This document shows positions 42,692-43,802 of a stretch of DNA of 64,000 nucleotides, one piece after another (the stretch's first letter is position 1; the number at the start of each line of letters is the position of its first letter). A program made the translations under genes and the position numbers. This stretch comes from Podarcis filfolensis (lineage: Eukaryota). Where the stretch lies: NCBI GenBank assembly GCA_964270895.1, contig OZ185437.1; one strand, 5' to 3'. A model generated the notes under the pieces. It was not told the DNA's origin. It did not search any database and was given only the letters and a program-made list of their open reading frames with translations.

Positions 42692-43802
42692 ATATATGTA
42701 AGTTAAGAAAAGAAGGAGTATAGAATAGAATTACCATCATTTAATAGGCTATATAGTTGTGCTGGTCTCAAACCCATGCCTCCCTCCTTTCTCACATATG
42801 CTATAAACTCCTCTTTTCCACAGACACACTACTGCCTGGTCATATCTCTGGGCAAAACTTCCCCCACTCAATTCAACTCCTTTGCTGCTAATTCACTGTT
42901 CCCCTCTGCCCACAATCTGAGAGCAATAACTACCACTACTGTATCCTTTCCAAATTTCCTAACCTAGGCTTGCCATATGGCGGGAAAATTCCTGACATGT
43001 CCTGGTTTTCGGGTGTAAAAATTGTGTTGGGGGAATTGCCAAAATGTCAGGGAAAACCCAGATGCATGGCAATGTGATGGGGGGGGAGGAAGCAGTGGAA
43101 ACAGCTCCAAAAGCTTAAAGTCACTATTGGGGGGGGGAGGTTTCCCCCCAAAAAAGCTCAACAATGTGGATTTGTTTCCAAAATAGCAAAACAATTTTGG
43201 TGTCCTCAAGAGCAAACCAGCTGGGTGGGCAGGTTATGCTTGCTCAACAACTTTGCGGGTGTCAGGAATTTTACTTATTGAAATACAGCAGCCCTATCCT
43301 AACCCAGAGATGGCACAATACACTTTGGCCCCTGAGGCACAAGCACCACCCAGGGAAGGTAATAATTATAAACTAAGTCATGATAACCCCAAAGACTGCC
43401 AACTGATGCAAGCTGCCTCACCCTGCTTCATTGTAGCATTGGCTACACCCGGCACCCATTCCTTGCTTAGACTCACCCACACAAATACTTGCTAAATTAA
43501 ACTTCTTTTCCATAGGTGCAGAACCTGGGGAATAACAGAGGGAGAGGGACATAGCAATGCACTCTACTTGTTGGCTTTCCTAGGATCTGGTTCAGCACAG
43601 TAGGAAACAGATGCTGGACCAGTTACGTCTTTGAACTTGTCCAGCGCAGCTCTCCTTACGCCCATCATCTCTGCACAAACAAATCCCCTTAGACCCAATG
43701 ACACAGGCCTCATGTCAACATAGAGCTGCCCTCTGTTAGCTTGTTTGCAACCAATACGTGAGATGAAATTAACATACCAATGGATAATTCTCCAAAGGAT
43801 AC
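42692..43802 (-). other. ADAT2: U12-type intron (ADAT2 intron 3) with GT...AT termini
   Basis: Donor GTATCCTTTG; branch point TTTTCTTAAC whose branch A lies 11 nt upstream of the exon; terminal dinucleotide AT. Confidence 0.85.

Follow-up and report, generated by a model that had tools for sequence, protein, structure and literature searches.

Intron 3 of the ADAT2 gene of the lizard Podarcis filfolensis: a very probable U12-type intron with GT-AT termini, and its vertebrate orthologues

The ADAT2 gene and its surroundings

The window analysed here is a stretch of 64,000 nucleotides from Podarcis filfolensis (GCA_964270895.1, contig OZ185437.1), and all positions given below are those of this stretch. 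Its minus strand carries a gene which, judged from the predicted product, is ADAT2, a small gene of six exons. The ADAT2 protein provides the catalytic subunit of the deaminase that converts A34 of tRNAs to I34. In exon 3 (43803..43953, 151 nt, ending in phase 1), defined by its translation and by RNA-like contigs, the translated sequence contains the two zinc-site motifs of enzymes with the cytidine-deaminase (CDA) fold, HAE (in the context HAEMVAID) and PCxxC. A search with this exon, in which residues 1–44 of the natural stop-free ORF at 43567-43935 were used as the query, returned tRNA-specific adenosine deaminase 2 with 100% identity in Podarcis raffonei and 98% identity in P. lilfordi and Zootoca vivipara, and PF00383 is present in the homologues of the exon 3 product. 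It is this combination of zinc motifs and close identity to annotated ADAT2 proteins that assigns the gene to ADAT2.

The remaining exons, all on the minus strand, were placed by homology and by their splice signals. The coding part of exon 1 (48221..48292) begins with the ATG at 48292, is followed by a GTGAGT donor and was found by tblastn with the Zootoca ADAT2 protein, while exon 2 (46780..46884), the translation of which ends in ETKN, has an AG acceptor before it and a GT donor after it and was found both in a six-frame scan and by tblastn. Exon 4 (42585..42691, 107 nt, translation ending in EPFQ) is defined by its translation and by contig joints at both of its ends; exon 5 (40735..40807) and the coding part of exon 6 (40614..40654), which encodes (A)PKSKVRRKECSK and the stop codon, were placed by the six-frame scan and by tblastn with the Zootoca protein. 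Between exons 3 and 4 lies intron 3 (42692..43802, minus strand, 1111 nt), whose termini are GT-AT and which is treated in detail below. The four remaining ADAT2 introns in the window, as placed by tblastn with the Zootoca protein, are all ordinary GT-AG introns; among them, intron 4 (40808..42584, minus strand) served as an internal control. In exon 2 (46884-46780) the window encodes GCLMVYNN, compared with GCLVVYNN in the Podarcis raffonei protein, a difference that may be one of species within Podarcis or of alleles.

The 5' end of ADAT2 is contained in a GC-rich stretch (GC 0.50, window positions 48000-50000). In the anole, the swan, the deer mouse and a snake, PEX3 (Peroxin-3) stands head to head with ADAT2 within ~250-400 bases, and by analogy the same divergent PEX3/ADAT2 pair is likely to be found in the window.

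Signals, reading frame and spliced joint of intron 3

The donor of intron 3, GTATCCTTTG, starts at 43802, directly 3' of exon 3 on the minus strand, and the nine-mer GTATCCTTT at 43802-43794 matches the U12-type 5' splice site consensus /RTATCCTTT in 9 of 9 positions, as had been claimed in an earlier note on this DNA, made from the sequence alone. The same note had placed a branch site near exon 4, and the motif TTTCTTAAC is indeed found there, at 42710-42702 of the minus strand. The octamer TTCTTAAC (42709-42702) agrees with the branch consensus TCCTTAAC at 7 of 8 positions, its last C being located 10 nt from the end of the intron and the putative branch adenosines (42704/42703) 11-12 nt from the last base of the intron. 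Intron 3 then runs out in ATATAT at 42692, so that its terminal dinucleotide, at 42692..42693, is a non-canonical AT, and exon 4 opens with AAATCCC. No AG occurs on the minus strand from 42748 to 42692, a tract which includes the interval between branch site and exon 4 that had been described as free of AG.

The position of the 3' end is dictated by the protein. The translation of exon 3 leaves one extra base, which the first two bases of exon 4 complete to a lysine codon, and the reading frames of the two exons therefore require the join 43803|42691; the claim that the AT end is forced by the frame is in this way borne out by the translations. Likewise, the size of 107 nt proposed for exon 4 is fixed by the GT..AG joint 42585|40807 present in transcript contigs. 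The GT-AT placement is moreover unique, 0 letters fitting both sides of the joint. As far as the motifs by themselves are concerned, RTATCCTTT occurs 4 times in the 64-kb window (1.45 expected) and the branch octamer 2 times (3.4 expected); with such counts neither of them is significant alone, and it is the position that counts. A donor placed exactly at the frame-defined end of an exon and a branch motif placed 10 nt from the frame-defined end of the intron, both of them conserved (see below), jointly lie far beyond chance.

Use of this joint in RNA was followed in assembled contigs, which were compared over positions 40300-44200 from four sequencing runs. One of them, X3, is independent and derives from DNA of the same organism; the others (X15, X17 and X20) are small, come from related organisms and are guessed to be RNA. 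X15, X17 and X20 each yield contigs that match exon 3 from end to end (43803-43953) with 0 differences and that extend 250-356 letters off the compared stretch, as is expected for upstream exons. In X17, a contig of 537 letters passes from exon 3 directly to 42691 over a gap of 1111 letters whose plus-strand ends are AT..AC, the ambiguity being 0; this is the spliced joining of 43803 to 42691 that the earlier note had proposed as a check, observed here in a related organism. This joint is represented by one contig of a relative, of which 28 letters fall in exon 4, fewer than the 31 taken as a rule of thumb; an overhang of this length is the expected product of an assembly graph with k=31 at a fork between spliced and unspliced sequence, and an exact match of 28 letters at the predicted base cannot be due to chance. 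The neighbouring joint of intron 4, 40807|42585, with CT..AC on the plus strand and hence GT..AG ends, is present in X20, and therefore the RNA-like runs hold spliced RNA. The DNA run X3 contains neither of the two joints (42691|43803 and 42585|40807). A processed copy of the gene was considered as a source of the joints and is unlikely, both of them being absent from X3. Intron 3 hence combines a U12-type donor, a U12-type branch motif, a branch-to-3' distance within the constrained range of ~10-15 nt and a joint that is used in RNA of a related organism.

The same evidence bears on the choice of the acceptor. It could be supposed that a different acceptor, a cryptic AG in the intron or in exon 4, is the main one in this species and that the AT joint is minor, and in favour of some flexibility at this intron it can be mentioned that in human an alternative donor event at the ADAT2 intron is up-regulated in ZRSR2-mutant samples (de Wolf et al., 2021; PMC8280824). 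However, as the earlier note had pointed out, the nearest upstream AG (42750-42749) leads to an in-frame stop after two codons (A|CC TAT TAA), and the first downstream AG costs 45 nt of exon 4 and thereby deletes 15 conserved residues, whereas the conserved block is complete in the proteins annotated for three lacertids; furthermore, 42691|43803 is the sole joint of exon 3 among the joints listed. Predominant use of another acceptor is accordingly very improbable, though minor alternative acceptors may occur beside it.

Orthologous introns and the type of intron 3

The orthologous loci of other vertebrates were reached through their annotated ADAT2 proteins, the borders of exons 3 and 4 being located by means of conserved peptides. 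The termini of the orthologous intron are GT-AT in the lizard Anolis carolinensis, the snake Ahaetulla prasina, the bird Cygnus atratus, the rodent Peromyscus californicus, the frog Bombina bombina and the bichir Erpetoichthys calabaricus, and GT-AG in the sharks Heptranchias perlo and Scyliorhinus torazame (3' regions at L006:11627-11678 and L008:26550-26601), so that the comparison of termini across vertebrates suggested by the earlier note turned out in favour of a conserved AT end in six other bony vertebrates. In every species compared, the codon and the phase of the intron are identical, the split codon is consistent with the annotated protein, and the annotated ADAT2 orthologues keep the same residues across the exon 3/exon 4 junction. 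In the alignment of donors, which comprises 10 loci and in which the paddlefish is counted for the donor only, its locus ending before exon 4, GTATC is invariant (10/10) and GTATCCTT is found in 8 of the 10. The alignment of the 3' regions (n=9, the window included) is free of gaps and displays a CTTAAC-like motif exactly 10 nt before the end of the intron in all nine species, in the form CCTTAAC in most of the orthologues. The last base of the intron is T, not G, in 7 of 7 bony vertebrates examined.

The intron is not new to the literature, which settles the question, left unanswered in the earlier note, of whether it had been described before: it was catalogued in 2006 under the symbol DEADC1. 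In Table 3 of Sheth et al. (2006; PMC1557818) DEADC1 appears among the non-canonical U12-type introns as GT-AT in human, GT-AT in mouse and “conserved”, and ADAT2 was formerly named Deadc1 (PMC4890804). According to Table 2 of the same work, GT-AT introns of the U12 type number 4 in human and 3 in mouse, and GT-AT termini are competent for U12-type splicing, as stated there with reference to mutational work. The human ADAT2 intron is typed as U12, GT-AT, also in Datasets EV1-EV3 of de Wolf et al. (2021; PMC8280824), and in a pan-eukaryotic survey GT-AT is listed among the conserved non-canonical termini of minor introns in animals. A full-text search for ADAT2 in connection with a minor intron found nothing, and none of the 15 top-ranked papers of a broader search on ADAT2 and the minor spliceosome has ADAT2 in its main text, the record consisting of the DEADC1 symbol and of supplementary tables.

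The intron of the lizard is the orthologue of this catalogued GT-AT minor intron of human and mouse, and is in this sense already known. The table of Sheth et al. carries no intron number, and we infer that the catalogued mammalian intron corresponds to intron 3 because, in the ADAT2 gene of Peromyscus, the GT-AT intron is the only one that departs from GT-AG among the junctions placed by tblastn. Gene and terminal dinucleotides are the same in the human/mouse intron and in the lizard, and the intron of Peromyscus shares with that of the lizard its position in phase 1 after the exon with PCxxC and before the one with KIPLVVYGC, the donor nine-mer and the spacing of the branch site. The differences lie in the species, in the length of 1111 nt and in a single position of the branch site (TTCTTAAC), the comparison with human having been made via publications and that with mouse via the deer mouse.

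A further possibility is that the major (U2-type) spliceosome takes out intron 3 in spite of its GT-AT ends, a route put forward for a handful of U2-type GT-AT introns. Such a class does exist, a conserved U2-type GT-AT intron having been reported in DGCR2 (Sheth et al., 2006; PMC1557818), and a pyrimidine-rich stretch precedes the branch motif of intron 3. Yet the donor GTATCC lacks the GTRAGT pattern of U2-type introns and forms part of a perfect U12 nine-mer that is kept from sharks to mammals, the TCCTTAAC-like motif keeps a constant distance of 10 nt from the end of the intron in nine species, and the human orthologue, typed as U12, responds to ZRSR2 mutation alongside other minor introns; removal by the major spliceosome can hence be given only a very slight chance. 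As for the idea that the AT at 42692-42693 arose by mistake in sequencing or assembly and stands in place of a true AG or AC end, for which no support was found and which is raised by the general rarity of GT-AT ends alone, it is practically negligible, since the independent DNA contig of X3 and the contigs of the three relatives are unchanged there among the differences listed, six other bony-vertebrate assemblies have the same AT and GT-AT is reported for human and mouse (PMC1557818). The AT, which the earlier note had recommended to verify in raw reads, was compared at the level of contigs: the X3 contig at 42583-43010 has 3 differences from the window (the two listed being 42736 and 42916), and in all four runs no difference at 42692-42735 is found among the differences listed.

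We thus hold with high confidence that intron 3 is a U12-type GT-AT intron, removed by the minor spliceosome and orthologous to the catalogued ADAT2 intron of human and mouse, a reading already put forward in the earlier note for the U12 type and the GT-AT ends, and now supported by the signals, by the exact contig joint, by conservation in jawed vertebrates and by the human and mouse literature. Signals and conservation are seen in the lizard and the exact joint in a relative; dependence of the lizard intron on the minor-spliceosome snRNPs would be expected from its human orthologue. In the mechanism that can be proposed, U11 and U6atac would recognise the donor GTATCCTTT and U12 would pair with TTCTTAAC, leaving one adenosine of 42704/42703 bulged; the second step would then cut 11-12 nt downstream of the branch, whatever the last base, and exons 3 and 4 would be joined to give the AAA lysine codon. 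The intron could end in AT because it would be the distance to the branch point, rather than an AG, that determines the 3' cut. A fixed spacing combined with a variable last base is what is expected of a 3' site chosen by the distance from the U12 branch point. As a class, the non-canonical U12-type introns (AT-AG, AT-AA, AT-AT, GT-AT and GT-GG) similarly have a variable last base and a 3' end set by distance; among them GT-AT is one of the rarer subtypes, and the ADAT2 case is unusually stable across bony vertebrates. With the canonical U12-type GT-AG introns, to which the shark orthologues belong, intron 3 shares donor, branch site and spacing, and it differs from them in having T instead of G as last base, as in all seven bony vertebrates.

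This distribution suggests that the last base of the intron changed from G to T a single time, which would have happened in the stem of the bony vertebrates. A bolder version, that after this one change the T was kept for >400 million years by selection, alongside the unvarying 10-nt spacing of the branch site, ADAT2 being a deliberately sensitive target of the minor spliceosome, appears unlikely. Were selection to keep the weaker AT end, ADAT2 and wobble-inosine tRNA editing would constitute such a sensitive target and not a frozen accident. The phylogenetic pattern is the only, small addition made here to what has been published; it is absent from the literature examined and may well be contained in existing intron databases. 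It provides a clean and dated example in which the GT-AT end, a non-canonical U12 terminus, has stayed unchanged over several hundred million years. For practical purposes, gene finders that accept only AG acceptors would get the exon 3/exon 4 junction of reptile genomes wrong, a junction that is settled by the data presented here; beyond correct annotation the importance is small.

Minor splicing and ADAT2 expression

Minor introns are often removed slowly. That the expression of ADAT2 is gated by minor splicing, as suggested in the earlier note, is plausible by analogy with the human gene. In the re-analysis of ZRSR2-mutant myelodysplasia, the retention of the ADAT2 intron rises from a PSI of 0.051 to 0.326 (de Wolf et al., 2021; PMC8280824, Dataset EV2), with a log2 fold change of 3.39 and an adjusted p of ~9e-12 (PMC8280824). 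These human data indicate that ADAT2 output can depend on the function of the minor spliceosome, and, given this retention of the human intron in ZRSR2 mutants, ADAT2 would tie the activity of the minor spliceosome to the supply of wobble inosine in tRNAs, a link which published data sets already imply.

Among the contigs from the three RNA-like runs of the lizard relatives, depth is 22-38 for exon 3, 12-26 for unspliced intron 3 and 2-8 for intron 4, contig depth being a poor measure and the unspliced intron 3 contigs reaching both flanking exons by just 28-30 letters. The larger amount of unspliced intron 3 than of intron 4 in these relatives is a hint that fits the slow removal of a minor intron. 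If intron 3 were retained, translation would read 79 codons of the intron and end at the stop codon 43566-43564 (ORF 43564-43935), and the product would be without its C-terminal half.

Two minor observations concern introns 3 and 4. An alternative acceptor AG of intron 4 lies 130 nt ahead of exon 5, at 40939-40938, and opens a segment (40850-40937, minus strand) that gives ADAT2 another ending followed by a stop, without the lysine/arginine-rich tail; this ending matches the annotated isoform X2 of Podarcis raffonei apart from one residue (A for T), and in X20 the alternative joint has a depth of 26.7 vs 63.5 for the normal one. In addition, very highly repeated short elements occur in intron 4 (42376-42490 and 41348-41478) and in intron 3 (42920-43312, a segment that also contains C and G runs), where the summed contig depth of the DNA run reaches ~1.4 million (42396-42526), 340,000 (41348-41478) and 1,000-4,000 (42920-43312), respectively. 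Probably these are dispersed repeats of lacertids, SINE-like or of another kind, and many spurious contig joints are caused by them.
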